Positions 7,680 through 63,918 of a DNA stretch of 64,000 nucleotides are shown here, in pieces (positions within the stretch are counted from its first letter, which is position 1; every line of letters starts with the position of its first letter). The stretch lies in the NCBI RefSeq assembly GCF_006345805.1, contig NC_043003.1:30380001-30444000 (forward strand), read 5' to 3'. The notes under the pieces were generated by a model that saw only the letters and a program-made list of their open reading frames with translations, searched no databases and was not told the origin of the DNA. Position numbers and translations under genes: made by a program. Source of the DNA: Octopus sinensis (Eukaryota).

Positions 7680-7939
7680 GTAACTATTCTAATATTCCAA
7701 ATATTCATTTTAAAAATGTATACATCCTGAGAATTTTTAATGAAATTATATAAAGTGACCTACGTGATTGTCAGGCTGATGATCTATAATATCCACACTC
7801 TGTATCTTTTCTGTAGATATTTACTCTCTCTTCCTTTTTGTTCTATCTTTCAATATTTATGATTTAGTATCATCTCTCTAACACAATTTGCGTTGACTTA
7901 TAATAGCCTCTTATATATTATGCTGTCCCTATGTTTCAG
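7680..7939 (+). other. Putative 5'-UTR intron of ZNF1
   Basis: Donor aaag|gtaact at 7680 and acceptor tgtccctatgtttcag|g at 7939. The donor context (tgaataaagaa...aaaggtaactat) recurs at 21851-21893 upstream of ZNF2. No transcript evidence. Confidence 0.35.
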
Positions 7940-8443
7940 GATATTTGGTAATATTGATGTGACAATTTCCCACAGAAGACACGTCAGCAGATCAATGAAT
8001 TATCTGGAAGACTAAAGAATGACTTCATGAGGATAACATGATAGAGGTCTTCTAACTTGAAATTGACTGGAAGTGTATGTTCTGGCTTGATTATGTATGG
8101 TTGAACTCAAGAAATTTAATAGAAAACATCACCAGCCTTTTGTGTAATGCCTAAGGTATCTGAGTATACTTTGAGAACTGAATATCATGTGTGACAGGAT
8201 TGGATTTAATCTAAAAATTATAATTAAGGCGAATGACTTTTATCTGAAAAGAGTATATGCGATATAACTATAAAAAATATTCCAAATTTTAATTTATATT
8301 ATCCCTAAAAATAATCTGTATCTTCATAAATTCCTGCCCAGTAATCTAACATCTTAATCACAGTATCATTTTGCTTTATAAAACATTGAATTTTTAAAAA
8401 AAACTAAATATAAAGAAGGAATTCTATTTGTATTCTGTGAGGA

Positions 8444-9844
8444 ATGAATAACATGGAAGAGAGATTGAGTGAGAATGAGGAAATACAATATGAGGATAAT
8501 GATTTTCTTCAACCAGATAAAAAAGATATGCAGATGAAATCATATGGCTGTGACATCAGTGCAAACCCCTCCATGAAAGTTAAGGACACCAGTGAACACA
8601 ATTTACTTGATACAAAATCAAATGTTTACCACAGTAAATTTTGTGATAAAGAGTTTACTACATGTGGTTCTTTGCTATCACACAAATGTACTCACACAGA
8701 TGAGAAAACATGTTTCTGTGATATCTGTGGTAAAATTTTCTCTTGTAAGGATGACTTGACTGTTCACAAATGTACACAAACAAGTAAGAAAACACTTAAC
8801 TGTGATGTCTGTGGGAAAATGTTTTATAAGAACTATGATTTAACTCGTCATGTACGTATTCACACAGGTGAAAAACCATTCCGCTGTGATATCTGTGGTA
8901 AAACATTTTGCCAGCAGTCTCAATTAAATCTTCACAGACGTACTCACACAGGTGAGAAACCATATCATTGTGATATCTGTGGTAAAACATTCTCTACAAA
9001 TACTTTAACTCGTCATATACGTACACACACAGGTGAAAAACCATACCACTGTAATAACTGTGGCAAATCATTTTCTCGAAATTATAAATTGACTAGTCAC
9101 AAATGTACTCAAACTAATGAGAAACTACACCCCTGTGATATCTGTGGTAAAACATTCTCTCAGAATTCTGTCTTAGTTCATCACATGCGTATTCATAGAG
9201 GTGAGAAACCTTACCACTGTGATATCTGTGGCAAAAAATTTTCTGGAAGTTCTCACTTAACTCGTCATGTACGTACTCACACAGGTGAGAAACCTTACCA
9301 CTGTGATATCTGTGGCAAAAAATTTTCTGGAAGTTCTCACTTAACTCGTCATGTACGTACTCACACAGGTGAGAAACCTTACCACTGTGATATCTGTGGC
9401 AAAAAATTTTCTGGAAGTTCTCACTTAACTCGTCATGTACGTACTCACACAGGTGAGAAACCATACCGCTGTGATATTTGTGGCAAAACATTCTTTTGTA
9501 ATAGTGAATTGACTATACACATATTTAGTCACACAGGTGAGAAACCACATCATTGTGTTATCTGTGGTAAAACATTTACTACAAAATTTCACTTAACTCG
9601 TCACACACGAACTCACACAGGTGAAAAACCATACCATTGTGATATATGTGATAAATCATTTTCCACAAATTATCAGTTAACTGTTCACAAATGTTCTTAC
9701 ATGAGTGCGAATGCATACTACTGTGGTATCTGTGGTAAAACATTTTACCGACATGGAGATTTCACTATTCACAAGCGTACTCACACAGGTGAAAGTATGC
9801 CACTGATATCTGTGCTGAAACATTCCAAGGAAATTCTCACTTGA
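8444..9844 (+). CDS. Poly-C2H2 zinc-finger protein ZNF1, 466 aa: 13 fingers (10 C2H2, 3 ending H-K-C without the last His) plus degenerate N-terminal fingers
   Basis: Uninterrupted ORF with repeated CxxC-x12-HxxxH and TGEKPY linkers, a short acidic N-terminus and no recognisable effector domain. The second ATG (8453, MEERL) matches the start context of the paralogs. Confidence 0.92.
   Translation: MNNMEERLSENEEIQYEDNDFLQPDKKDMQMKSYGCDISANPSMKVKDTSEHNLLDTKSNVYHSKFCDKEFTTCGSLLSHKCTHTDEKTCFCDICGKIFSCKDDLTVHKCTQTSKKTLNCDVCGKMFYKNYDLTRHVRIHTGEKPFRCDICGKTFCQQSQLNLHRRTHTGEKPYHCDICGKTFSTNTLTRHIRTHTGEKPYHCNNCGKSFSRNYKLTSHKCTQTNEKLHPCDICGKTFSQNSVLVHHMRIHRGEKPYHCDICGKKFSGSSHLTRHVRTHTGEKPYHCDICGKKFSGSSHLTRHVRTHTGEKPYHCDICGKKFSGSSHLTRHVRTHTGEKPYRCDICGKTFFCNSELTIHIFSHTGEKPHHCVICGKTFTTKFHLTRHTRTHTGEKPYHCDICDKSFSTNYQLTVHKCSYMSANAYYCGICGKTFYRHGDFTIHKRTHTGESMPLISVLKHSKEILT
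9199..9462 (+). repeat. Perfect 84-bp coding tandem repeat, 3 copies plus 12 bp (three identical fingers)
   Basis: Units start at 9199, 9283 and 9367 (partial unit at 9451) and are nucleotide-identical; each encodes [28 protein letters not shown]. Confidence 0.95.
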
Positions 9845-15839: not shown

Positions 15840-16200
15840 TCGGAAAATTTATGATTTTTTTACTCTCCTCCTCTCTTAATGATGATACCAATGGACCACA
15901 CGTGTGCTCCATTGATGGGATATAAGCATCAATAAAAAAAAATGGTAATTTAAATTTTTACCTCCCACCTTAATTAAGTGAGGCTGTGCATGTGTAAGAA
16001 AGATACATTTTTTAACAGAAAAGTATGCTATTAAAATGAAGTATCTTTTGTGGATCTAGTTTTTTTCATTTGCAAAATATGCATATCTACTTTTTTAAAT
16101 CAGTGGATAAATGACCTCAGGCTTTCCAATATTTTCAATCATAAAGAGAAACAATCAGAAGTGGGGTGGTGTGTAAAAAAAAATCATAAATTTTCAAATT
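15840..16200. mobile_element. Foldback/MITE-like element with inverted termini
   Basis: gaaaatttatgatttttttac (15843) versus gtgtaaaaaaaaatcataaattttc (about 16171-16196), with an inner inverted pair aaagatac...gtatcttt. The same terminus occurs at 7495-7530. Confidence 0.5.
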
Positions 16201-16689
16201 TTATTTTATTGCATAAAATGTAGTTATGGGGAGAAAAATATTGAAAAAACATCAATACATGCAACAGTGAGAAAGAACTGAGGAGGGTTGTCTTGGGGTG
16301 TGCTAGAAACAACAGCCAAATCTCCCTTAAATCACACTTTTTAATCTGAAAATATTTACAATTTTTAAAAAAATTTAATTCTGATGCTTAAGAGAAAATT
16401 TGGCTGTTGTTAGCAGTTTACTGTCCAAATGGGTCTTGTCTATGCTGTGATAATGAGGTCAAATAAGACTAAAACATGACCATTACTGTCTCCTTTAAGA
16501 AAAAAAATCAGATTTTCCCATAAGCATGAAATCTTTTTTACAAGTAACAATTTATTGAAGCACACAGGATATCCCACAGTGGAATAGTAGAGGTCTAGGT
16601 TACTAGAGGAGTTCTTACAGCAGTATTGCTGAAAGCTAGGTCACTAGCATACAAGTGTTCCCACTACAGAGCTGCTGAGAGCTAGGTTG

Positions 16690-19600
16690 CTAAGAACTGG
16701 ATCACTAGCCTGCAGTTTTTGTGGCTGGGCTTCTGAAAGCTAAGCCACCTGCATATAGGACTTCTCAGCCTGTCCTGATTGGGGCGATATATTGTACCAG
16801 AACACTGCTTCCAGCAACGAGATGTGCCCCCTCTCTGCCATGGCCTTGATCGTTCAATGATGTCTTTCCATGATCCCATTTCCACTCAGCCAGTATGCTG
16901 CTCTGAAGAAGCGGTGCACATTCCACTTATCAAGTGTCTCCGAAGAAAATGCAGTGCCATTGTCCATCAACAATTCATCCACAGGGCTCCGTTCCAGAAA
17001 TATCTCATTCAGGATACATGCAATCTCGGCTGCAGTACCTGTCTTCAGTTCCTTTTAAATGGCCATCCGACCCGGCCCACAGTCAACTATTGAGAGATAC
17101 ATCCCCTGCCAGAAGTGTGTCACATCCATTACCAATTGTCTCCAGTTGTGCTCTACTGAGATATTTCCCTGCTCATGCACACCCAGAGCAGGGTCAATGG
17201 ATTGATACCTATCACAATTCCCGACCAGCTTTTGGATGTTCTGCCTAGTGATGGTGGCGTCAACCCTCCTGGCAAGATACAGGATTCAATCCATGCCCAT
17301 ATAATGCATGGCATGCAGTCTCCTTAGCTACAACACACTGCAGCTATCCCCTGCTTCGAATCTTCAAGCTCCGCCAACCAGTCCTTTTACACCATGGTTA
17401 GAATGTCTGCCTTGTTCCTTTCTGAAGGCACAAAAACCACACTCATCTTCAAACCAAATTCAGCAGCCAGTTCTCCTAGAATCCCTAGGTGGTACTTTAC
17501 TAACATCTCTGCCACCCCTTTGGTTTGAACCCTCTTTTTATGATTACTGATCCTACCCAGCCAAAAACTGTAGCTGAATCAGTTTGGATTTCAATGGAGT
17601 ACATCCCCCATTTCAAGGTCAAATTCATCTTCAGCACTGCGTCCAACTCAGCCATGTTGATGTGGTTGCAATTGTCAGCTTTTCAACTTCTATTTCCATT
17701 ACAACCCTTATCGCTTTATTGCTAGCATTGCACTATAGAGTCCCATTCTCCAATTTGGGCATGTACCAGTTCCCCCTTACTGGGTCTTCTGCTCATCCTC
17801 TCTATGATCTCCTGCATTATTGCCACTGTCCCCTTTCCCAATTTGTCTCCCCAGTTTTTCCCTTATCTCTTGTAGCTGCACACTGCCTGCAGCTACCCTT
17901 TGATTAGGTAGTGTCCCAGGAGCCTCCCACACATTAAGAACAGTTCTCTCCTGCTGAGGCTGGTACCTAGTTCTGGGATCTCATTCCCCCTCTGGAACAC
18001 CAATGAGTCTGTTTTATCTCTTTGAAGCTTGAATCCCAGTGTGGCTCCTCCAACCATTGGCTCCAGTGGCTTTGCAGTCAGTTCAAACCTCTTGAGGTGA
18101 CCTACTACCTCTGTGGCAGATACTACGGTCTCGTCTACCAAGATGTCATCTATATACGAATTGGTGGCCCTTCTTATCCTGTCACCTTTCCCTGGATAGA
18201 CTTGAGCACTGTTTCTATGGCCTTTGACAGCATGGAATTTAGCCCAGAACCCAGCCCAGTCAGACAGTATATCTGGCCCTTATATCATACCAGCTGATAC
18301 TGTCACAGTTTCTTGTTCACATGGAGCTGCAAATATGCTGACTTCAAGTCGACAATCATCACTGCCCTTGCCATCTGTCTTCACTTGTGTAGCATCTCAC
18401 CACAGACATCAGTCACGTCACCACCTGTGTGGCATGATACATGGCCATTCATCTCCTGAAAGTCCAGTACTGGTCTGATTTTACCCTTTGTTGGCTGCAC
18501 CACCTCTTTTCATGGGATAAGGACACCCTCCTGAATTCACCTCTCTATCTCTCCTTCAAATTCACTCCTGGCATGTCCCTTCAAGGTATGCTAGTAGCAG
18601 CTCAGCCTGTTCTTCAGAATTGGGGGACTCCCCTTTCCAGCACCCTCCCCCCGAAAATCTTTGTCCTCAACAGTGTAAGCTGTACAGTTCCTTGTGGAGC
18701 TCTGCTCCCTCACATGTTGCACTCATGGTCCCCTGCACCACCAAACGAAACCATGTTTCCACCAACACTGACACCTCTAAAGTGGTTGATTGTATCCATT
18801 CCCATCACTACATCAATTCTGTCTACCACATTGTCAATCACAATCACCTGCAGCCTCAGTGTTGTGCCTTGCACCGCTATATCCACGTTACTGCCACCCT
18901 TATATCCAGTCTCATTGCCTTCGACTGCCTGAACACTTCTCGTCCCCTACTATTTTTTTGTCACTCTCGCAGTCATGAGAGATGTCATACAGCCTGTAAG
19001 TTCAAGGGCTTTCAACACCTTTCCCCCAACTGAGACTTCTACTACAGGCAGCGACTGCACGAATGCCTCTACTTGCTTGCGAGAGAAGTTTGAAAGGCAG
19101 CAACTTCCCTGTGACCGTTTTCCTGGCTGCAATTTTGAGTGATATGCCCAGTCTGCCTGCACTGGTAGTAAACAGGTCCGGGCTTTGTTTCCATGCAGCC
19201 CCTCACAATGTGCGGCCCTTGCCACTTAAAGCACCAGCCCATGAATGGTCACTGTTGCTCCATGGTAGTTTTCTTCTCCCCATTCATTACTCGTTGTTGT
19301 ATCACACTGTGGGCTTCCACAACGGCCATCACCACTTCCCTCTGCCAGGTATTTTGTGTTGACATGTGGATTTGAACGATAAGCTCGTTCACTGCCATTT
19401 TCTCACTGCCTGGCAGTTGTACCAATAGATCATTGGGAAAACCATTTACGAAGGCCACTCATGCCACCTTCCCTAAATCCTCTCTAGTGAAGTTGGACAG
19501 CATGGCCAGTCTCCAAACCTCCATGACATACTCATCAACATGTTCCTGTCTACCTGACTGTTCCCAGCTTAGCAAATGTGGCGTACATCCCCTCCGTATA

Positions 19601-19835
19601 ATCTTCCCTCAAGCACTGCTTGATCCTCACCATCCACAGTTGGTCTTCCTTGTCTACCTCAAGGTACAGCATCAGCACACTTGCCTCCAGGTACAGAGCC
19701 AAGAGACCTCCTACATTGTTGATGCCTTGTAGCCAGGCCACTACTTTGATCTTATGGATTCAGGCCACTACATCTCCTTTGCCATAGAACGGTCCAATAG
19801 CATTGCTGCTGATCCTTATCTTTGCTGTCATCACA
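16690..19835 (-). mobile_element. Ty3/Gypsy LTR retrotransposon internal region (gag-PR-RT-RH-IN), decayed
   Basis: Minus-strand translation in Gypsy order: gag, two CCHC-type knuckles (CFKWQGPHIVRGC, YQCRQTGHITQNC), protease (KALELTGC for ALVDTGC), RT YIDD at 18145-18156, RNase H (HINMAELDA, TDSATV, NKAD), integrase (HAMHYMG..CDRY, MDVTHF, LMDNG, GNGIMERHH). Many stops and frameshifts. Confidence 0.92.
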
Positions 19836-20130
19836 TAGTAGGGGATAATAACAATGAAATAGCTTGTTTTATGAGGGAAATAAGAAACAATTTGCCATCC
19901 AGCTCTACTCAATGCAAAACTTGCACCTAGTCTGCACACCTAGCGATCGCAGCTGCTAATACCCATCCCTGTCAGTTCACTTACCTCTGTTTGTCATGAG
20001 CACCCAAGGCAAAAGAGGATGACCCTCACTTCCTCCCTCACACTTCCTGTTCCACTCAAGCCCCTTGACCATTGACATCACAGTCCTTTCCTTCCGGCTC
20101 ATTTCATTCTCACATAAGCTGCACAGCATT
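19836..20130 (-). repeat. Putative 5' LTR of the Gypsy element
   Basis: Lies next to a PBS-like TGATGACAGC (19833-19824, compare TGGTGACAGC) and is more GC-rich than its flank. No matching second LTR was found near 16690. Confidence 0.4.
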
Positions 20131-20835: not shown

Positions 20836-22174
20836 ATTACTTTTTCTTAAGAATATACATGTTTTTATGATATACACAAAAGGTTATTTCTATACGAGAG
20901 GCTCTTTATTATCTTTATAAACTATCTTTCGAATTTATTTCGAAGTAGATAATTTTCTTAAAGCTTCACTTATTCGTTTCGGTAATTCAGAGAAGCCTTG
21001 TATTTTTTGCAAACCCCATTGTCGTTGGTCCCAATTTTAATAACACCGTTTTCTTCCTCTTATCCCACGTTTCCTTATGTAAGCATTATTTATATATATT
21101 TTTACATATTTCTTGTCTCGAAAATTTCTCTTTTAAATTTATAATTCTACTTCATCTGCACAATTCCTTCTCCTTACAAAAACCTGTTTTCTTTCGTCTT
21201 TATTTTTGCTTGTTTTCGTTTTCTCTGATTTTTCTCTTCATTTAAACTTCAGTTAATATTGTTTTCAGGGAGTTACGGCATTCGTTCGATATAGATATTT
21301 TGAGTATATCTTTGTTCTATTTCTTTAACCATGTTTTTTTACTCTTGTTTTTATTCTGTAGTCCTCTCGAGGACTGATAGACAAGAGTGTAGACTTTAAA
21401 TGTTTTACGAAATAGCGGCTAGACCCTACTTATTCTCATTACGTGTGATCTGCCTCAAGTAAACCTAATCGGTTAATGTTTACATCTTCGGATGACACTT
21501 TGTTGTACAAACACCGTAAATATGAACAGTGATTCCTGTTTCCTATAGCGAAACCCATCAGTCTTAGAATCTTGGACGACTTTGTGGCAGATGCAATTCA
21601 ATACCCCCAACGCGTTGTAAAGTTTCTTGGTTTTATAATACAAACTTCCTTTTAAAGTGATCTAAATTTAAACCTTCTATCAAACTTTCGTTTTAATATA
21701 TGTTACAAACATCAGCTTAATACTGACAGTTATTTTACTAAATTCTTCATTATTTTAAAAATTAATCGAAACAGTGGCAGTGTATTTCAAGAGACATTTG
21801 GTAAGGAGAGTTAATAGAATTTTAAACAGCATAAATCCCAATGAAGTATTTGAATAAAGAAAGTCAGGCATTTACTATGTAAAAGGTAACTATGAGGATA
21901 ATAGTAGTGATAATGATTGTCTAAATATCTCCTTTCAAATGACCGGCTCTTAAGTCATGTGATGAGAGTACTGGAAGAAGACATTCGGACGGAACCAAAG
22001 TCTTGTAGACAAGAATTATATTGTTAAATAACATTTTATATTCTTTGTTGGTCATCAATGTAGGTTACTAATATGTTGGTACTTCTTTCCTATGTTATCT
22101 TTGTAATAACATAACTACAATAGTTTTCAAAATTGTTGAATGTTTGAGAAAAGAAAGGAATTGTACTTGTGTCC

Positions 22175-22610: not shown

Positions 22611-22749
22611 GTCTGAAAACTACAATGGAGTTGGCAGTTGTCTTATCTCTGGAAATATGTTCTGATTCTTTTTATTATAATTTTCAGTATGTATGATCAA
22701 ATATTTTTTCCAATAAAACTCATGTTAACACTTCATTGTCCTTTATGTC

Positions 22750-22794
22750 TTATATTGTCTTTTTATTTCAGGTTATCTGATGGTATTAAGGTAA
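22750..22794 (+). promoter_or_regulatory. Conserved splice acceptor (ttttatttcag|gttatct; exon starts 22772) and 4-codon uORF MVLR* (22780-22794)
   Basis: Homologous acceptor plus uORF at 41200/41209-41223 (MTLR*) and 50930/50942-50956 (MTLN*). Confidence 0.65.
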
Positions 22795-23378
22795 AATGTT
22801 TTCACTAAAGATGATCAACATATAAAGTTCTGAAGATTAAAATTAACTTCATTAAGCTATGTCAGCCTGTTAATACATTTTCCTTGGAATTGAGATTATT
22901 TACTGTAATACCAAAACCAACAACAGATGGAAGGCTGTAGTAACAGTATCAACAGCATATGCATGACTGCAGCTCTTTTGTTACAACTACTGCTACAGTA
23001 AAAGATTAATTAGACTGAAGATATAAGGACTAAAAACTTCATCAAGCTGCTGTCAGCCTGTTTCTGAAACTCTTAGTTGAATGGATGTGAACTATTTCCT
23101 TGGAATTGAGATTGTTTGCAAAAATTCCTACATAAATGTTTACAGGGAAATTTTCTTTATAAATTAATTTAGAAAGCTATACTGTGAACTTTTAATAATT
23201 TTATACTTTAAGAATTTCATATCTGGATATACCTTGTTAATTGGAATGACTTTGATATTTTAGTTGTTGGCTGTCACATGATAAACTAATAAATCCCTTT
23301 GAAGTATTTTTTTTAACAGTTAAGTCATCAGACTTTACAAAGAATATCACACAGAAAATTAGATAAAAAGTAAAAGTT

Positions 23379-24356
23379 ATGGATGAAAAAGCAGAACCCA
23401 AAAATATTGATTCATCAGAAGAGAAATTACATTCTTGTGATATATGCAAGAAGTTATTCACAACAAAAAAGAATTTAATTCAGCATAAATTAATTCATTC
23501 ATTCTCTAATTTTTATCAGTGTGAAGTTTGTGGCAAAAGGTTCACTGCAAACAATTTATTTTCTCTCCATAAATGTAGTCATTCAGGAAAAAAACTGCAC
23601 CACTGTGATATCTGTGACAAAAATTTTTCTTCAAGTGGCAGTTTATCTACCCACAAGCGTATCCACACAGGGGAGAAACCATACCACTGTGATATCTGTG
23701 GTAAAAGATTCTCTCAGAAAGGTAGTTTATTTACCCACAAGCGTATCCACACAGGGGAGAAACCATATCTTTGTGTAGTTTGTAACAAAGCCTTCTCTGA
23801 TAGTCGTAGTTTATTTATACACAAACGTATTCACACTGGAGAAAAACCATATCACTGTGATATCTGTGATAAATCATTTTCTACAAAGGGTCATTTAACT
23901 TGTCACATACGTATTCACTCGGGAGAGAAACCATACCACTGTGATATCTGTGGTAAAATGTTTTCTGGAAGTGGTGACTTGTCTTCCCACAAACGTATTC
24001 ACACAGGGGAAAGACCCTATCACTGTGACCTGTGTGGTGAAACATTTTCTAGAAATCATAATTTAACTTATCACAAACGTATCCACACTGGGGAGAAACC
24101 ATACCAATGTGATATATGTAATGAAGCATTTTCTACAAGGAGTCATTTGTCTTGCCACATACGTATTCATACAGGAGAAAGACCTTATCACTGTGAAATC
24201 TGTGGCAAGACTTTCTCTCAAAGTGCTCATTTGTATCGACACAAACGTATTCACACTGGTGAAAGACCATACCAGTGTGATATCTGTAATGAAAAATTTT
24301 CCAGAAGTGATCATTTAACTCAGCATAAACGTATCCACACAGGAGAGAAATCATAG
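23379..24356 (+). CDS. Poly-C2H2 zinc-finger protein ZNF2, 325 aa, 11 fingers
   Basis: Intact ORF with TGEKPY/TGERPY linkers; start context aaagttATGGAT; ends HTGEKS-TAG. Confidence 0.93.
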
Positions 24357-34149: not shown

Positions 34150-36230
34150 AATTAGAATTTTTGGTTAATGTTGACATTATTACCTGGAAACAAAATCGAA
34201 AAAGAAAAAAAAAATGGTTTAGGAAACGAATATGAAAACAAAAAAAAGTCCGGTAGCGAGAGGCCTTCGGAAAATTCACAAAATCCGATGTTTTTCCTCA
34301 TAACTTTTAGGAAAATGTTTGTTTTTTTTATGAAATTTTATATAAATACCTTTCAAATGGTATAGATTATGATTATAAAGAAATTTGAGGGGAAAGGGAG
34401 AGGACTTCGAAAAATTCACAAGATCCGATGTTTTTTCCCTCGTAACTTTGAGGAAAATGGATATCTTTCTACTTCACACCCACGTAGGAAACGAATCTGA
34501 AAACAAAAATGCACGGAAAGTCATGGGGTGGGTAGAGAGAACTTTGGAAAATTCAGAAGACATTCACTAGATCTGAGTTTTTCCCTCGTAACTTTGAGGA
34601 AAATATAATCCTTTTGAAATCACAAATTAGGCTTTTCTTCAGGACCTTGGATGCTAAAAATCCTATTGAAGGGTGCGGGTCCTTACTTCTACTAAATAAA
34701 TATGTGTGTATATATATATATATACACGAGGGGCGTTCAATAAGTAATGCCCCTGACCCACTTCCCATAGCAGTAGAGCAACGAAACTTGGCACAGTTAT
34801 TAGTCTTTTTCTACATAGGAATCACCTATGATGCGGCTCTGGAGACCGTTTTTGTAAAAGAACCCAGCTTGGTCCTCCAACCTCAACGTGACTTCAGAAA
34901 TCAAGGCTGCATCATCTGGGAAACGCTTTCCTTTCAAAAACAACTTCATGATTGGGAAGAGGTGAAAATCAGAGGGTACAAGGTCAGGAAAGTAGGGGAG
35001 ATGGGGAGGAGTTCATAGCCATACGCCTGTGCTCCTGATCTGGCGACAAGCGAGTTGTGGACCGGAGCGTTGTCCTGCAGGAGGAGGATGCCTTTGCTGA
35101 TCTTGCCCCGCCTCTTGATTTTGATAACTTCTCTTAATTTCCTCAAAAGTGAAGCATAATAGGCTCCTGCAATTGTGGTACCCTTTGCCAGGAAATCTGT
35201 CATCACTACTCCGTCCTGGTCCCAGAAGACTGTGAGCATGACCTTGCCAGTGGAGGGCTGCACCCTTGCCTTCTTTGGAGGGGGTGAGTCACGGTGCTTC
35301 CACTGCATTGACTGGGCTTTGATCTCTGGATCATCGTGATGGACCCAGGTTTCATCCTGTGTAATCAGTCTTTTGAAAAATTTTGACTCATCTTCTTGGC
35401 ACATCTCCAAATTCACCCTCGAGCACTCGACGCGTTCTTGCTTCTGGAAAGGCGTGAGCAACCTGGGAATCCATCTGGCAGACACCTTTTGCATATGCAA
35501 ATGGTCATGAATAATAGTTTCCACAGACCCGGTACTAATCTTGACCTCATGGGCTATTTGGCGAATAATTATGCGTCGATCTTCCAAAATGGCAGCCTCA
35601 ACTTGACGGACAGATGCCTCATCAATGGCAGAAGGGGGCGACCAGATCTGGGAGCTGTTTCCACAGAGTTCTGACCATGTTTGAATTCACGATGCCAGCG
35701 TTTTACAAGGTCATATGATGGGGCATCATCACCATAAGTTACTTTCATTTCATCAAAAGTCTCCCGTGGTGTGCGTCTTTTCAAATACAAAAACCGGATC
35801 ACTGCTCGACACTCAACAGGCTCCATTTCACACTTGACTCGGTTCAAACACCTGTAAATCAGAAACCACAATTAATTCAGAGCTGTAATTTGCCACTTAC
35901 TCTATAGAGATATAAAGGATTGCACATGCAAAATTTCAGCTAGATCAAACAACTGCAAGTGGGTCAGAGGCATTACTTATTGAACGTCCCTCGTATATAT
36001 ATATATATGTACACACACATACACACATCTAATTTTCCGAAGTCCTCTCCCTACCCCCCGTTGCTTTCCAGACAAGGCCTCTCCCCACTCCCCGCTGCTT
36101 TCCGGGCATTTTTGTTTTCATATTCGTTTCCTACACCCTTTTTTTTCCTTTTAACAGCCATTGCACTATTTTTTTTTTTCCATCTAGTTTCCGGGTAACG
36201 TCAACATGAACCGAATTTTTTGTTAAACAA
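34150..36230. repeat. Long imperfect inverted repeat (foldback) with modular subrepeats, interrupted by the mariner at 34727-35993
   Basis: The left arm ttggttaatgttgacattattacctggaaac..aggaaacgaatatgaaaacaaaaa..gagaggccttcggaaaatt is mirrored at 36025-36225. The module gagaggacttcggaaaattcacaagatccga occurs three times at 34259-34610. Confidence 0.7.
34727..35993 (-). mobile_element. Near-full-length mariner (DD34D) transposon, 1267 bp; transposase about 35826-34800 with two frameshifts
   Basis: 37-bp TIRs CGAGGGGCGTTCAATAAGTAATGCCCCTGACCCACTT with 2 mismatches, inside (TA)n; MEPVECRAVIRFL, WIPRLL, QDETW, QDNAPVH, (H)LPYFPDLVPSDFHLF, YVEKD*. Confidence 0.93.
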
Positions 36231-40745: not shown

Positions 40746-41179
40746 GCCTAATCAAACTTTGGGCCAAACAAAGTGATCTAGTTAACATGTTAGATAAGAT
40801 GATGGGTTGGCAGAAACATAAGAGCATCTGACTAGATGCCTTGTGCTATTTGTTTCAGCCCTTTACTTCCTGTATTTAAATCTTCCTGAGGACAATGTAA
40901 TTGACTGTTCTCCCTCCTACAAATATCTGGCCTTGTGTCTATGCTAGATACAATTGTTGTATAAGTATTTCTATATGCTTGCATCAGGTGAAAAAATATT
41001 TTTAGGATGTTCTAGTAATGTTTTGCAGTGTTGGGTGTAGTGACCAGATCCACAGTCCTTATGATCCATTCCTACCTCATCTCTCTAACACAATGTCTAT
41101 GTTTTAGCTCTTCCTTGCTACTGTAACTTTTAATATCTGTTCTTAAATATGTTTTCTCCCATAATCTTTATAAGCTTTG

Positions 41180-41223
41180 TTACTTATCTTTTTATTTCAG
41201 GTTATCTAATGACGTTGAGATGA
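41180..41223 (+). promoter_or_regulatory. Conserved splice acceptor (exon starts 41201) and uORF MTLR* (41209-41223)
   Basis: tttttatttcag|gttatcta ATG ACG TTG AGA TGA. Candidate upstream donor aaag|gtaagt at 39452. Confidence 0.65.
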
Positions 41224-41576
41224 AAATATTTCACAAGGATCAAGATATCAAACTTTAGAGCTTGAAAATAATTTCAACAAATTATTTTTGCATCTCCTGG
41301 TTGATGTGATGTGAACTGAATTAAACTGATATTCCCTTGAAATTTTTACCATTGCTAGAAGGTTTTTCTGTACAAATTCATCTTAGATTTACAATGAAGC
41401 TTTAACAGTTATATGTATGTATGTAACTATTAATCGATGTTTAATCATCTTTTAGCTGCTACTTATTTAGAAGGGTCTTTCCTTAGAAATACATTTGAAT
41501 TGCATCCCTACCAGCCAAGATATCATAGTTTTATAAAAACCAGCAGACAGGAAAATATATATTAAGGGAGAAAGCT

Positions 41577-42236
41577 ATGGATTGGCAAGTAGGATCAAAA
41601 CATAATGATGTGTCTACTGATACACAGGAAGATATAGGAGAGGATTTACACTCTTGTGATGTATGTGAGAAGTTATTCACAAAAAAAGATCTACGTCAGC
41701 ATAAATTGACTCATTCACCCCCCATATTATACCAGTGTGAAGTGTGTAATGAAAAATTCTCTAGTGTCAGTGTGTTAGCTGAACACAAAGAAATCCATGC
41801 AGGAGGAAAAAATTTTCAATGTTATATTTGCGATGGCATATTTTCCACAATAACAGATTTATCTTCTCACAAATGTACCAACACAAGAGAAAGGCCATAC
41901 AACTGTGATATTTGTGGCAAAACATTTTCTAGAAGTGGTCATTTGCAAGCTCACAAACGAATCCACATCCATGGAAGACCATACAAATGTGATATATGTG
42001 GTGCAAAATTTTCTAGAGGTGGTAATTTGACTGCACACAAAAATCTTCATAGAGGATCAATAACATATGACTGTGAAGAATGTGGAAGACAATTCAATCA
42101 AATCTGTCATTTGTCTCGACACAAACGTGTTCACTCTGGGGAAAAGCCATTCCAGTGTGATATCTGTAAAGAAAGATTTTCCAGAAGTGATGGTTTAACT
42201 CAACACAAACGCACCCACAGAAAAAAGAAAAAATAG
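41577..42236 (+). CDS. Poly-C2H2 zinc-finger protein ZNF3, 219 aa, 7 fingers (one ends HKCTN)
   Basis: Intact ORF; start context aaagctATGGAT; shares the QHKLTHS first finger with its paralogs; ends HRKKKK-TAG. Confidence 0.9.
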   Translation: MDWQVGSKHNDVSTDTQEDIGEDLHSCDVCEKLFTKKDLRQHKLTHSPPILYQCEVCNEKFSSVSVLAEHKEIHAGGKNFQCYICDGIFSTITDLSSHKCTNTRERPYNCDICGKTFSRSGHLQAHKRIHIHGRPYKCDICGAKFSRGGNLTAHKNLHRGSITYDCEECGRQFNQICHLSRHKRVHSGEKPFQCDICKERFSRSDGLTQHKRTHRKKKK

Positions 42237-46010: not shown

Positions 46011-46819
46011 TGCAAAAACTAAGTTAATAGCGAGCCCCTACTGAAGCTTAGGAAATATTTTTCAACGATATTCGGTGTATATTATTTTAAAGACAATTGC
46101 GTTTTTTTTTTATTACAAAACAATTAGAAGCATTGAAAAAAAAAGCAAAACAACCTTAAGGACAGTCAAACATTTTTTTTTTCAAAGTAGACCACTACAG
46201 GCGACAATTCACCTGTGTTTACTCTGAATAGCTCCGGCAAACTTTGTTAACCATTCAGCTATGTTCCTTCTCTTTCAACTGGAATTTAACCCCTGACCAG
46301 CCCTAAATTATTAGACATTTTGGTCGTGGCCATCCCGCTTTGTTGTAAATCCAATACTGCATTGTTCAGTTTGACTTTTTAAAAAATTCGGCTGCTATTT
46401 CTAACAGCTCGGTGGAAGATATCTCTTGACCGAAGTTGTACAAGGTCTGTGTTTGCTCCTTGTTTTCAGTTTCTCCAAAGACCCAACTAAACTCTCGTTT
46501 TTAACTTCAGCTGAACAGTTCCCAGTCCCAAGACTGCCCTGGTCGTGCAGACCTGATCAAAGGAGTTTATTTTTAACCAGACGTAAAGTAACCCTTTACT
46601 TCATAGAAATGTTTTATTTCTACGTGGGGGAAATTTGGTTACTATAAGTTTACATTGAAGAGACTTGGTCGTTGACAGGAGCCTCATAAGTTAACGCAGT
46701 GAACCATTTCATACGACGCAACTAAATTCTGACCCCAAGTTGTTGGCTTGTCACCAGTAACCGATTTTCCTGTTGAAGCCTACAGTAAAATGACCTTGTT
46801 GGGGAGGGGTTAAGCCAAT

Positions 46820-47366
46820 TTAAAAAAAATTTTTTTTGAATCTTCATGCTGCAGTTTAGTACTTCTGGAAGTACACCGGTACTTGTACCGTAACATCGCC
46901 CGAAGTTGTTTCACTTTTTCCAATAAAAACGTTTTTAAAAAGTTACAGAGGTTTAAAATTTGATAATTTTCATCCTATCAGGAAAGAGGATTTGCAAGCT
47001 GTCATTTTGTGCGTGACAGCTCGTCTTATCAACTGTAAACAGAGCAAATAAATTGGGTGGGTTGATGGGGATGGTAATCAAAATTAAAAAAAAATTTTTT
47101 TTGAATCTTCATGCTGCAGTTTAGTACTTCTGGAAGTACACCGGTACTTGTACCGTAACATCGCCCGAAGTTGTTTCACTTTTTCCAATAAAAACGTTTT
47201 TAAAAAGTTACAGAGGTTTAAAATTTGATAATTTTCATCCTATCAGGAAAGAGGATTTGCAAGCTGTCATTTTGTGCGTGACAGCTCGTCTTATCAACTG
47301 TAAACAGAGCAAATAAATTGGGTGGGTTGATGGGGATGGTAATCAAAATTAAAAAAAAATTTTTTT
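46820..47366. repeat. Tandem duplication, 265-bp period, two apparently identical copies
   Basis: gaatcttcatgc at 46838 and 47103; gggtgggttgatgggg at 47055 and 47320; the junctions lie in A8-9/T7-8 tracts. Confidence 0.9.
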
Positions 47367-48747: not shown

Positions 48748-50489
48748 TTGCAAGAAAATGAGGAGTGTGGCATGGGAGGAAGTCCCTCTACGATGTCGAA
48801 AACATGTGAATCCGAATTTTTTTTTTTTTAATTACTGGTTCATAAGTGATAGGGTGGGGCTTGGTCCGATGAAGTACCCATAATAGCTCTTTTTACAACG
48901 CTAGCCGTGCCATAATTTTCCATCAGTAACGTCACCAGGTGTAGTAAGGTCACATGATGAATTACAATTTTCACAGGTGTACATATTTATAATTAGTCGA
49001 CCCCGTGCCAACCACGGATAAATGTTGTCTCCGACATTTCCTAATTGAGTGATAGTCCACGATTCCTCTAAGATTGATTTTTTTAAAATTCTTTTACTAC
49101 TTATCTCCCCTTCAATTTTTATTTACTTTTTTAATCACACCAAACTGAACAATTACCTATTTTACTATCTTTAGTATTTAGTACTGGTCTTTCATCCAAT
49201 ACATTACTCTTTTATCAACGAGAATTATTGGCCTTCCATGTCTCGTACAGTTTACCTCTCCTAAATAAATCGTAAAATGCTCTCCAATGATTAGAGGCGA
49301 GATTTTTCAATACGAACAATGCCACTTCCGGTATATCGCCCTCTTTGAATCTATAAACCTTTTAGATATATTATTCCCTCGTTGAACATATTTACACTGT
49401 TAGTAATATCTAATTAACTCTAATTGAATTGAGGAATTGTACATTAACCAGAAGACGACAATAGAGATATCCTGTAAGAAGTTGTTGAAAGTTCTCATCA
49501 ATCTGTCCTCCTTAATATTCAAGCCTCACTACTTCAGTCCATCTCTCATTATTTCATTGTTATGCAAGTATTATTTATATGGATTTCGCTTATTTCTTGT
49601 ATACAAAATTTCTCTTTTATATTCATTTCTAATACTGCACCATTTCTACTCCCTGAACAATCATATTTTTCTATTCTCTTTTCGTATTTACGCTTCTTCG
49701 ACCTCCCTTCATTAAAAATTTGGAGTCAATCTAGTTTGCAGGAAATATCCTAATTTTTTTCACCCACTCCTCCTTTATCATTTCGATACATATTATTTAC
49801 TCTTGCTTCTTATTAGTGTTGCCCTTTAGAAAATATAGCCTTGCGTCATGCAGAGTTTATTATGGAATAAATAGCAACTTTAAATAAACTCAGTCACGTG
49901 CAACTACGCCAAATATATATTCCACAATATGAAGATGCCTTGCAATATACAGTATTTATAGACAATGGTTTCGCACTTTGTTATAAAACTAATATCTTCA
50001 TAGTATACTTTTTCTATATGTTTGATTCTGTTAATGCATTTGTTCTGCGTCTCTATCGCAAGTGCTTCTTATACAAGGCGAGTCACTACCGCTAACTGGG
50101 TACCGTTACTACTTTGCCACCTCCTCCCCTTATCAAATAGTTCAAGTTGAGACATGATTTGGTCTGCGTTAGCCAAAGTTTCAGTCTCGTTTCTAACAGT
50201 GTTTGCAGCTGGTATCACAAAGTTTGTCTTTTGTGGTATTGAATCGCTATTCTTTTTATGACACTTCTACAAATATGTGGAATAGGACATAGTCCTTGTG
50301 GTTAGTATCTGCTTTATAAGCAGCACAATGCATACATTTCCACTTGGTTTTAGTACAACTACAGTAGGGGATACCAAGTAGCTACCACAACATATATCAT
50401 ATTCAATAACTTTTCCTAATTTAAAAACCAAGGTTTGAGCCGAATGAAGCACTCTACTTTGTATTTGTTATAGTGTAGATGTGTTTCTT

Positions 50490-50879: not shown

Positions 50880-50956
50880 TGTTCTAACACTTCATTGTCC
50901 TTTACGTCATATATTATCTTTCTGTTTCAGGTTATTATCAAATGACATTAAATTGA
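50880..50956 (+). promoter_or_regulatory. Conserved intron end/acceptor (exon starts 50931) and uORF MTLN* (50942-50956)
   Basis: taacacttcattgtcctttacgtc..tctgtttcag|gttattatca aATG ACA TTA AAT TGA; the intron end matches 22726-22771 of ZNF2. Confidence 0.65.
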
Positions 50957-51353
50957 AGATATTTCATTGAACAGCATTAACATATTTATAAACTTTTTGA
51001 AGTTTAAAAATAACTTCAAGCTGATATCAGCCTGTTTCCACAATTCTTTGGATGAATGGATGTGAAATATTTCCCTGCAATTGAGATTATTTTCAAAAGT
51101 TCCCAAAGAAATTCTTAAACTGGAAAATGTGTACAAATTAAACTAGGGAGATTTACCTCAAAGTTTTAATTGTCCTATGTGTAATGACTTTAATAACTGG
51201 GTATCTCATTAAATTTATATAGATTAACAATCCTGTAGTTATTACTATATTATATCAGAAGATATAGTTATATCTTCAAGTTATTTCATAACAGCCAAGA
51301 TATCATCTTTAATAAAGCCTGTGAACGTGCAAAATATAGATTAAAACAAAGTT

Positions 51354-52355
51354 ATGGATGACAAAATACAAGCTGAAGTTATTGATTCATCTTCTCAGAT
51401 ACAGGAAAATACAGAAGAGAAATCTCACCCTAGTGATGTATGTGGGAAGATATTGTCACCAAAAAAGATTTTAATTCAACATAAATTAACTCACTCATCC
51501 TCCAAGCCATACCAGTGTGGAATTTGTGGTAAACAATTCTCCAACAACAATTTGTTAACTCACCACAAACATGTCCACACAAGAGAAAAACTATATCAGT
51601 GTTATATCTGTGATGCAACATTTTCTACAAAGGGTCTCTTGTGTTCTCATTCATGTATACAAAAAGGAGAACGACCACACCGTTGTGACATCTGTGGCAA
51701 AACATATTCTAGAAGTGGACAATTGTCTTCCCATAAATATATCCACACAGGAGAAAGACGACACCATTGTGAAATCTGTGGTGAAACATTTTCTAGAAGT
51801 GCTAATTTGTCTAACCATAAACTAATTCATACAGGAGAAAGACCATACCAGTGTCATATTTGTGGGAAAAAGTTTGCTAGAAATGCTGATTTGTCTTGCC
51901 ACAAACATATTCACACAGGAGAAAGACCATACCACTGTGATATCTGTGGTACAACATTTGCTCAGAGTAGTAGTTTATCTAAACACAAACGTATTCACAC
52001 TGGAGAGAGACCATACCAGTGTGATGTCTGTGATAAAAAATTTAATACAAGTGGTCACTTGTCTACCCACAAACGTACTCACACTGGAGAAAAACCATTC
52101 CACTGTGATATTTGTGGTAAAACATTCACTCGAAGTAGTTCCTTATCTCAACACAAACCTATTCACACAGGAGAGAGACCATACCATTGTGACATTTGTG
52201 GTAAAACATTTTCTACAACTCGGAATTTAACTCGACACAAACGGATTCACATTGGAAAGAAACCATACCACTGTGATATCTGTGATGAAGCATTTTCTAC
52301 AATGGTTCGTTTGTCTTCCCACATACGAATTCACACAGGAGAACAACCATCATAG
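51354..52355 (+). CDS. Poly-C2H2 zinc-finger protein ZNF4, 333 aa: 10 fingers (one ends HSCIQ) plus a first finger lacking Cys1
   Basis: Intact ORF; start context aaagttATGGAT; TGERPY linkers; ends HTGEQPS-TAG. Confidence 0.93.
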   Translation: MDDKIQAEVIDSSSQIQENTEEKSHPSDVCGKILSPKKILIQHKLTHSSSKPYQCGICGKQFSNNNLLTHHKHVHTREKLYQCYICDATFSTKGLLCSHSCIQKGERPHRCDICGKTYSRSGQLSSHKYIHTGERRHHCEICGETFSRSANLSNHKLIHTGERPYQCHICGKKFARNADLSCHKHIHTGERPYHCDICGTTFAQSSSLSKHKRIHTGERPYQCDVCDKKFNTSGHLSTHKRTHTGEKPFHCDICGKTFTRSSSLSQHKPIHTGERPYHCDICGKTFSTTRNLTRHKRIHIGKKPYHCDICDEAFSTMVRLSSHIRIHTGEQPS

Positions 52356-62634: not shown

Positions 62635-63918
62635 TCATTGATGGGGTTTCTTCTTTGAGTGAGTATGTCTATGTGAAGACAAATTAGATCTTTGAAAAAT
62701 TGTTTTACCACAGATATCACAGCAGTATGGTTTTTCGCCTGTGTGGATGCGTTTGTGGGAAGATAAATTAACACTTTTGGAAAATGCTTTACCACATATA
62801 TCACAATGGTATGGTTTTTCTCTTGTATGAATATATTTATGGCATGATAAATGACCTCTTTGAGAAAATGTTTTACCACAGATATCACAGTGGTATGGTT
62901 TCTCTCCTGTGTGAATATGTCTGTGGCAAGACAAATGGCCAATTCTAGAAAATGTCTCACCACAGATATCACAGTGATATGGTTTCTCTCCGATATGGAT
63001 ACGTTTGTGAGAAGATAAGCAGCCAGTTTGGGAGAACGTTTTGCCACAGATGTTGCAATCATATGGTTTCCCTCCTGAGTGGATGCGTTTATGGGAATAT
63101 AAATTACTACTTCTAGCAAATGTTTTGCCACAGATAGCACAGGGGTATGGCCTCTCTCCAGTATGAATATATTTGTGTTGAGATAAATGACCACTTTCAG
63201 AGAATGTTTTACCACAGCTATCACACTGATATGGTTTCTCTCCTGTGTGAATACATTTGTGTCGGTACAAATGAGAACTTCTAGAAAATTTTTCACCACA
63301 AACATCACAACCATAAGGTTTCTCCCCTGTGTGAATACACTTATGTTCAGATAAATAACCTCTCTGACAAAATGTTTTACCACAGGTATCACACTGATAT
63401 GGTCTTTCTCCTGTGTGAATATATGTATGACGAGATAAATGGCCCTTTTGAGAGAATGTTTTGCCACAAATATCACAGTGATATGGTTTCTCACCAGTAT
63501 GAGTGTGCTTGTGTTGAGAGAAATGTGAATTTCTAGAAAATGTTTCACCACATATATCACAATGGTAAGTTTTTTCTCCAGTGTGAATTCGCCTGTGTTC
63601 AGATAAATGACCCCTTTGAGAGAATGTTTTACCACAGCTGTCACAGTGGTATGGCCTCTCTTCAGTATGAATACGTATATGGTGCAATAATACATTGCTT
63701 GTAGTGAATATTTTACCACAAACCTCACAATGGTATTGCTTTAACACTGAGTGAATTAATTTATGCTGATTTAAACTATTTTCTACTGTAAATAACTTCC
63801 CACAGATGTCACAACAGAGTGATTTCTCTTCTGTATTTTCCTGTATCTGATCAAATATATCAATAGTTTCAGTTTCTGTTCTACTCATAACCAGGTTATC
63901 ACATAATTTCTCCTCCAT
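62635..63918 (-). CDS. Poly-C2H2 zinc-finger protein ZNF5, 427 aa, 14 fingers, inverted relative to the other five genes
   Basis: Intact ORF; start context aaagtcATGGAG; shares 29 identical nt (cagatacaggaaaatacagaagagaaatc, [10 protein letters not shown]) with ZNF4. Confidence 0.93.

Follow-up and report, generated by a model that had tools for sequence, protein, structure and literature searches.

A four-codon upstream open reading frame shared by descent in the leaders of an octopus C2H2 zinc-finger gene family

The window analysed in this study, a stretch of 64,000 nucleotides (nt) of Octopus sinensis DNA (NCBI RefSeq assembly GCF_006345805.1, contig NC_043003.1, positions 30,380,001 to 30,444,000 of the forward strand), is AT-rich animal DNA of about 35% GC that carries a tandem cluster of C2H2 zinc-finger (ZNF) genes, named here ZNF1 to ZNF5. 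In several of them a 15-nt upstream open reading frame (uORF) stands just inside the exon that encodes the protein, and the sequences indicate that it is shared by descent across a large ZNF family in three octopus species. Its ATG is the best-kept and slowest-evolving triplet of the leader, and weak purifying selection probably acts on this start codon in many copies. The best reading is that of an ancestral uORF that may be weakly selected or merely tolerated. The chances seem about even that the 15-nt frame, an ancestral leader element of this Octopus-specific C2H2 zinc-finger family, acts as an ordinary regulatory uORF and not as a stress switch. The most likely mechanism would be that of an ordinary weak uORF, permissive for reinitiation, that mildly damps ZNF translation. 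To our knowledge, octopus genomes hold one of the largest known lineage-specific zinc-finger expansions, and its post-transcriptional control is almost wholly unstudied. Many octopus ZNF genes share the leader architecture described below, in which the acceptor and several leader blocks are conserved and a very short uORF stands at a constant offset; this offers a concrete, testable entry point. No prior description of the uORF was found in the searchable literature.

In the window, the intact uORF is found in ZNF2, ZNF3 and ZNF4 (coordinates in Table 1). With a slash at the predicted splice junction, the exon starts read ttttatttcag/GTTATCTG ATG GTA TTA AGG TAA in ZNF2, cag/GTTATCTA ATG ACG TTG AGA TGA in ZNF3 and cag/GTTATTATCAA ATG ACA TTA AAT TGA in ZNF4, where a TTA duplication makes the spacer 3 nt longer. 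The leader of ZNF5, which lies beyond the window end, contains ATG GCA TTG AGA TAA. ZNF1 has the homologous sequence GTA ATA TTG ATG TGA and has lost the ancestral ATG: its exon starts at 7940, GTA (7948-7950) occupies the homologous ATG site, and a start-stop ATGTGA (7957-7962), 17 nt after the exon start, re-uses the homologous stop triplet (7960-7962). The first-pass annotation had pointed out the four-codon frames of ZNF2, ZNF3 and ZNF4, which occur with exactly the sequences and at exactly the positions it gave, and the start-stop of ZNF1, which is present as described and can now be refined as a derived state. It had also cautioned that descent alone might explain the likeness. This caution was well placed: homology extends to either side of the acceptor, and three copies alone cannot separate selection from descent. 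As the entire acceptor region is homologous, common descent suffices to account in full for a fixed-offset ATG in three AT-rich paralogs.

The family sample comprises 24 leader copies from three species and eight chromosome records, gathered via look-ups of family proteins with their 10-kb flanks and with an nhmmer profile of the block. The records are CM016865 (the window chromosome), CM016868 and CM016886 of O. sinensis, OX597837, OX597841 and OX597842 of O. vulgaris, and CM046628 and CM046629 of O. bimaculoides. Each of the 24 copies lies 5' of a ZNF ORF, and the encoded proteins belong to a single family whose N-termini take the form ME(E/N)(K/E)LC... or MD.K.... The positional conservation claimed for three paralogs proved genuine in this sample, and older and wider than had been noted. 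The ancestral exon start is cag/AATATCAG ATG ACA TTG GCA TAA, and its exact 15-mer occurs in L6b and L10a, on two chromosomes of O. bimaculoides, and in L5b of O. vulgaris. Seventeen of the 24 copies retain the homologous ATG. A 3-4 codon ORF that ends at the homologous stop is present in 13 (ZNF2, ZNF3, ZNF4, ZNF5, L5b, L6b, L7a, L7b, L8c, L9a, L10a, L12a and L12b); it starts 1-12 nt into the exon and terminates before the main ORF. The frame was kept through change in L7a and L7b, where an in-frame 3-nt deletion leaves the stop in frame, and in L3a, which lost start and stop and gained an in-frame ATG (-3) and TAA (+3), giving six codons. These cases were counted in favour of an ordinary uORF. 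Four copies kept the ATG, lost the homologous stop and have longer uORFs, namely L8b (8 codons), L4b (10), L6c (36) and L9b (42), and no ATG is found at the site in ZNF1, L3b, L3c, L5c, L6d and L8a. Orthologues of the window genes were not found in the sister species, so the conservation test rests on paralogs; in an Argonauta outgroup the one locus examined held no family member, which is uninformative. The leader of L9b (L009 8800-9850) is 1193 nt long and contains inserted repeats, including (TA)n and sequence resembling a short interspersed nuclear element (SINE); a 1-nt insertion shifted the old uORF stop out of frame and gave rise to its 42-codon uORF.

Retention was compared with neutral evolution simulated on the tree, with branch lengths taken from 155 other leader columns. 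Of the 23 copies that still have the site, 17 retain the ATG, against 5.7 expected (P=0.0005). The corresponding figures are 14 of 22 against 5.4 for TTG at codon 3 (P=0.0065), 16 of 23 against 9.5 for any stop at codon 5 (P=0.055), and 9 of 20 against 5.0 for ACA at codon 2 (P=0.12). Calibration on 123 background triplets gave a median P of 0.50, with 5.7% below 0.05 and a minimum of 0.0075, and ATG retention was more extreme than in all 123. The comparison with neighbouring untranslated-region (UTR) sites that the first-pass annotation had proposed thus came out in favour of the start codon and was marginal for the stop. Parsimony assigns 3, 3 and 3 changes on the tree to the ATG columns, as compared to an exon median of 6. 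A fraction of 0.76-0.88 of copies agrees with the consensus at these columns; the same is true of TTG, and the leader islands TCA, AAG and TTA are similar. Codon 2 takes nine forms and codon 4 thirteen, mainly GCA vs AGA, and no third-position relaxation is seen. Since codons 2 and 4 are free and show no codon-position pattern, the peptide does not appear to be selected. Selection for a conserved peptide was accordingly tried and rejected, with no amino-acid conservation in excess of nucleotide conservation. As a general rule for uORFs, start codons are constrained and peptides are neutral (PMC7889888). In the group of L6b, L9a, L10a and L5b, the uORF block (block A) is clearly better conserved than the leader remainder or the third positions of the coding sequence (CDS).

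The conserved acceptor that precedes the uORF is, to judge by its motifs, a complete 3' splice site. AG is present in 23 of the 24 copies (CAA in L5b), the tract holds 12-15 pyrimidines in 17 positions, and yTnAy motifs occur at -16 to -45; TTTCAGG is invariant in the four window copies, ZNF1 to ZNF4. Unlike the acceptor, the intron is at alignment noise level over -300..-61 and beyond about -100. On the exon side, an alignable leader of about 170-230 nt with several conserved islands is common to all 24 copies. Every main ATG of the window ZNF ORFs is preceded in frame by a stop 1-16 codons 5' (4 codons in ZNF2), so the CDS is self-contained in one exon and the stretch from acceptor to ATG is non-coding. 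ATG is depleted in the leaders, with an observed-to-expected ratio of 0.74 (z=-3.8), vs 1.08 for CAT and 1.00 for ATG in adjacent introns. Upstream ATGs (uATGs; uAUGs in the transcript) become sparser towards the main AUG, with densities of 2.57, 2.10 and 1.06 per 100 nt in the successive thirds of the leader. Depletion of uAUGs that is strongest near the main AUG is a general pattern of eukaryotic 5'UTRs (Zhang et al. 2021, PMC7889888). No conserved donor was found within the leaders, and there is therefore no hidden intron. The conserved acceptor, the strand-specific ATG depletion and the lack of leader donors form an indirect but consistent case that the leader would be mature 5'UTR. A possible donor within the uORF of ZNF2, TTAAG/GTAAAA, was rejected, being conserved in no other copy.

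The context of the uORF start codon is weak, with C at -3 in 13 of 17 copies and mostly A at +4. By contrast, a purine at -3 and a G at +4 surround the main AUGs, and the context in ZNF2 (GTTATGG) is strong. If the element works as an ordinary uORF, a minority of scanning 40S subunits would initiate at its weak-context AUG, translate 3-4 codons and then terminate. With so tiny an ORF, 180-650 nt before the main AUG, scanning would mostly resume, and together with about seven other non-conserved uAUGs the element would lower ZNF translation modestly and for the most part constitutively. The leaders contain 1-15 uATGs each, with a mean of about 8, and those besides the uORF's own are not conserved and differ between paralogs; the earlier warning that these AT-rich leaders hold other uATGs thus holds good.

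Ordinary animal uORFs resemble the octopus element in several respects: the uAUG is better conserved than the interior, the peptide is unselected, the main AUG has the stronger Kozak context, and leader uAUG depletion is strongest near the main AUG (PMC7889888). The octopus uORF differs from them in being shared by descent among many paralogs of a massively expanded, lineage-specific transcription-factor family, at a fixed offset (base 9) from the acceptor, and in being known from sequence alone. Conserved peptide uORFs (CPuORFs), which are found preferentially in transcription-factor genes (Hayden and Jorgensen 2007, PMC2075485), are likewise conserved across paralogs and species 5' of transcription-factor ORFs. 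However, CPuORFs are defined by amino-acid conservation, usually over tens of codons, whereas the octopus uORF has four codons, of which codons 2 and 4 are variable, and no codon-position pattern. A minimal uORF consists of an AUG and a stop, as in the AUGUAA of Arabidopsis NIP5;1. The ATGTGA of ZNF1 at this place and a second conserved ATGTGA or ATGTAA further down the leaders of ZNF2 to ZNF5 are of this kind, but the octopus element has four codons, not zero, and the ZNF1 start-stop is derived and occurs in one copy only. The second ATG-stop is part of another conserved leader block, GAATGGATGTGAA(A/C)TATTTCC, which lies at 23079-23099 in ZNF2, 41300-41318 in ZNF3, 51054-51074 in ZNF4 and about 9808-9830 of L002 in ZNF5. 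It reads ATGTGA (ATGTAA in ZNF5), has the same offset of -294 from the main ATG in ZNF2 and ZNF4, and occurs twice in tandem in ZNF3. A related block (TCTATGGTGAA..CTGTGAAATATTTC) is present in distant family members.

Several observations weigh against a selected, working uORF. Block A was aligned by hand and the background with MAFFT, and the site was chosen post hoc. Since misalignment inflates the background rate, the rate used may be too high; halving it raises the P value for the ATG to 0.08, and reducing it to one third gives 0.30. In the window subfamily, block A is overall no better conserved than the leader remainder or CDS third positions. TTG at codon 3 is nearly as constrained as the ATG, which a model of selection on start and stop only does not predict. 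The stop is only marginally retained, and its link to ATG retention is not significant: TAA or TGA is found in 13 of 16 ATG-bearing copies vs 3 of 7 others (Fisher P=0.14). Seven of the 24 copies have intact ZNF ORFs and lack the homologous ATG (ZNF1, L3a, L3b, L3c, L5c, L6d and L8a), and the losses arose by independent point mutations and deletions. L8c (L008 12008-12240), in which the ZNF ORF is frameshifted after the second finger and looks like that of a pseudogene, keeps the acceptor and a four-codon uORF, ATG TTT GTG GTA TAA. The uORF is also intact in L5b (L005 about 9500-9565, ATGACATTGGCATAA) despite the destruction of its acceptor, in which AG is mutated to AA (TTTCAA). This copy is a natural 'acceptor knockout', and its next acceptor, tatttcag/ATATTTCATC, lies 3' of the uORF. 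RNA-derived contigs (Logan/ENA) included none for ZNF2 or ZNF5, and the 60 short-contig matches screened yielded one family-like fragment (P0229, 586 nt), which is too short.

Several of these points would fit a sizeable, though on balance unlikely, alternative in which the uORF itself does nothing and is carried along as a passenger by a block that splicing or binding conserves. The first ~25 nt of the exon would then be conserved for splice-site definition, as an exonic enhancer, or as a protein-binding motif, and the ATG and TRA would be tolerated, since a uORF so small, so weak in context and so far upstream would be nearly costless. Such a block would account for the constraint on TTG, for the islands TCA, AAG and TTA, which equal the ATG in raw conservation, and for the frames that persist in the dead-acceptor copy L5b, with its intact 15-mer, and in L8c. 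The absence of ATG depletion in the distal leader third, where uATGs are apparently tolerated, points the same way, as does the fading of the ATG signal if misalignment inflated background divergence. However, the ATG surpassed every background triplet on the same yardstick, variation is free within the block at the spacer and at codons 2 and 4, which argues against uniform block constraint, and the frame-preserving changes (the L7 deletion and the L3a shift) resemble selection for an ORF. Nor did the initial 75 nt of the exon show any conserved RNA structure (0 pairs), and the window gave 0 Rfam matches. A proneural E-box (CAGATG) over the ATG was considered and rejected, as the CA dinucleotide is not conserved. 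The passenger account is further favoured by the persistence of the stop in three ATG-less copies (ZNF1, L3b and L5c) and by the non-significant link between ATG and stop. The same persistence could be read differently, with the TAA or TGA ending a longer uORF or small cistron begun in exon 1 and the ATG being an internal Met. In ZNF1 and L5c the frame is open from the acceptor, a TAT/TAC (Tyr) codon is conserved in that frame directly after the acceptor, and the spacer indels are multiples of 3 (ZNF4 +3, L7b +3). A frame entering from exon 1 nevertheless seems very improbable: TAA in L4b and TAG in L3b come before the stop, L10a has no spacer at all, no ATG was seen by eye in the candidate exon 1 of ZNF2, ZNF4 or ZNF5, and with a spacer of only two codons the open frame is not significant.

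It is improbable, too, that conditional inclusion governs the element, such that the choice of a splice site or of a downstream transcription start, and not eIF2 status, would switch the uORF on or off. The candidate sites are a tandem acceptor ~40 nt 3' (pyrimidine-rich CAG/ATACATCATCAATATTG) and a proximal cttcag/ATAT... located 85-170 nt before the main ATG. An AG after a pyrimidine-rich stretch precedes block B in many copies, L5b, without the distal AG, keeps only the tandem downstream acceptor, and proximal acceptor-like sites recur in L6b, L7a, L8a, L8b, L8c and L9b; the concentration of ATG depletion in the proximal leader third would also agree with such use. However, the acceptor that is conserved is the distal one (23/24), the downstream AG is absent in L4b, L6c, L6d and L8b among others, ZNF2, ZNF4 and ZNF5 have no good proximal acceptor, and the leaders contain no conserved donor. 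The gradient of ATG depletion, moreover, is also seen in ordinary 5'UTRs (PMC7889888). In the leaders of L006, L007, L008 and L009, the proximal cttcag/ATATCAGTGAAGATTGC resembles the distal acceptor together with block A (cag/AATATCAGATGACATTGG), with GTG replacing ATG; this motif may go back to an ancient duplication of the acceptor module within the leader, or may serve as an alternative 3' splice site. The first-pass annotation had suggested a translational switch, for instance a stress- or stage-dependent one, like that of GCN4 and ATF4. Of that overall interpretation, the conserved uORF stood, and its start codon turned out to be the best retained, whereas the switch found no support. 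In such delayed reinitiation, the short 5' uORF would permit reinitiation and eIF2-alpha phosphorylation under stress would decide whether downstream inhibitory uORFs are bypassed on the way to the ZNF ORF, and we consider this hardly credible here. The octopus element does resemble uORF1 of GCN4 and ATF4 in having 3-4 codons, a 5'-proximal position, AU-rich flanks and a place in a transcription-factor gene; such a very short uORF is present in 13 of the 24 copies, and the leaders contain more uORFs downstream. On the other hand, no positionally conserved downstream inhibitory uORF was found among 20 leaders, a uORF overlaps the main start in only 4 of the 20 and in none in the window, and the distance from the uORF to the main AUG, like leader length, is unconserved (181-1193 nt), with duplications and transposable-element insertions. 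The uATGs in between are not conserved and differ among paralogs, and with so weak a uAUG most ribosomes would skip uORF1. GCN4 and ATF4 reportedly need efficient translation of uORF1, and their mechanism also depends on a conserved inhibitory uORF. A switch of this type is unsupported because neither an efficient uORF1 nor a conserved inhibitory uORF is found here.

Beyond the preferred reading of an ordinary weak uORF, a bolder claim can be made, which is quite unlikely: M-x-L-x-stop at exon base 9 would be a cis-regulatory module common to much of the octopus-specific C2H2-ZNF expansion, possibly hundreds of genes. Selection would have maintained it from before O. bimaculoides diverged from O. 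vulgaris/sinensis, and it would serve as one family-wide translation handle, possibly toggled by the use of the distal acceptor vs a tandem or proximal acceptor that bypasses it. If the uORF is inert, it provides a calibrated example of how far descent and tolerance preserve a uORF across paralogs.

Table 1. Coordinates of uORFs, acceptors, leaders, candidate exon 1 ends and main ORFs of the five ZNF genes (window positions unless a locus is given; aa, amino acids)
Feature	Position	Strand	Remarks
ZNF1 uORF homologue	7948..7962	+	ancestral ATG lost
ZNF2 uORF	22780..22794	+	4 codons; starts at exon base 9; context CTGATGG; acceptor AG ends at 22771
ZNF3 uORF	41209..41223	+	acceptor AG ends at 41200
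ZNF4 uORF	50942..50956	+	acceptor AG ends at 50930
ZNF5 uORF	L002:9713-9727		outside window
ZNF1 acceptor	7905..7939	+	homologous 3' splice site
ZNF2 acceptor	22735..22771	+	branch-point-like motif, polypyrimidine tract, CAG; 13/17 pyrimidines; yTnAy at -27/-20
ZNF3 acceptor	41165..41200	+	polypyrimidine tract and CAG
ZNF4 acceptor	50895..50930	+	homologous 3' splice site
ZNF2 leader	22772..23378	+	non-coding; 607 nt; 12 uATGs
ZNF3 leader	41201..41576	+	376 nt; 9 uATGs
ZNF4 leader	50931..51353	+	423 nt; 7 uATGs
ZNF2 candidate exon 1 end	21073..21095	+	donor-like TTAT/GTAAGC; GT at 21079-21080; unproven
ZNF4 candidate exon 1 end	49558..49580	+	TTAT/GCAAGT; unproven
ZNF1 main ORF	8444..9844	+	466 aa
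ZNF2 main ORF	23379..24356	+	325 aa; 11 C2H2 fingers
ZNF3 main ORF	41577..42236	+	219 aa
ZNF4 main ORF	51354..52355	+	333 aa
ZNF5 main ORF	62635..63918	-	427 aa; leader beyond window end

The leader of ZNF2 is the longest in the window because of an internal direct duplication of about 190 nt, in which 22845-22871 corresponds to 23035-23062 (AACTTCAT[T/C]AAGCT..TGTCAGCCTGTT). Further upstream, a candidate donor-like TTAT/GTAAGT, which would mark the end of a putative non-coding exon 1, lies 1.3-1.8 kb 5' of the acceptor, at a position kept in ZNF2, ZNF4 and ZNF5. Elsewhere the upstream regions consist mostly of interspersed repeats and ~84-bp tandem repeats. Long arrays of the ~84-bp unit are located 3.4-6 kb 5' of several acceptors (L006, L007 and L009) and are common to ZNF loci across chromosomes and species. 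The 2015 octopus genome paper is said to describe 70-90 bp tandem repeats flanking C2H2 genes.

A search with the whole ZNF2 protein was dominated by generic vertebrate zinc-finger proteins and surfaced no orthologue, and none of the five window proteins has an entry in the protein cluster collection that was looked up. The ZNF1 ORF contains three successive identical 28-residue finger units, which indicate a very recent tandem duplication within the gene. A 749-residue gene model on the chromosome's minus strand extends for over 40 kb across the ZNF cluster (L001, L002); either a long gene harbours the cluster in its introns, or ZNF exons have been chained by the model. Three deposited CDS models of the family, P0216 (L004 10001-12668), P0152 (L003 10001-12730) and P0192 (L007 10001-13628), splice out the middle of long ZNF frames, which suggests either exitron-like splicing or annotation artefacts; in L004 the ORF has 591 aa and the deposited model 200 aa. 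Between ZNF2 and ZNF3, in a slightly GC-richer stretch, a 213-aa ORF (34946-35587, minus strand) resembles a fragment of a mariner/Tc1-type transposase. The region 16000-20000 has a GC content that reaches 0.42-0.48, a strongly negative GC skew and, at 18441-18932, a low-complexity ORF of 163 aa; it probably represents an island of repeats or transposons. Finally, a direct repeat of 97% identity at 46796-47366 (46796-47101 matching 47062-47366) reveals a tandem array whose period is about 266 bp.

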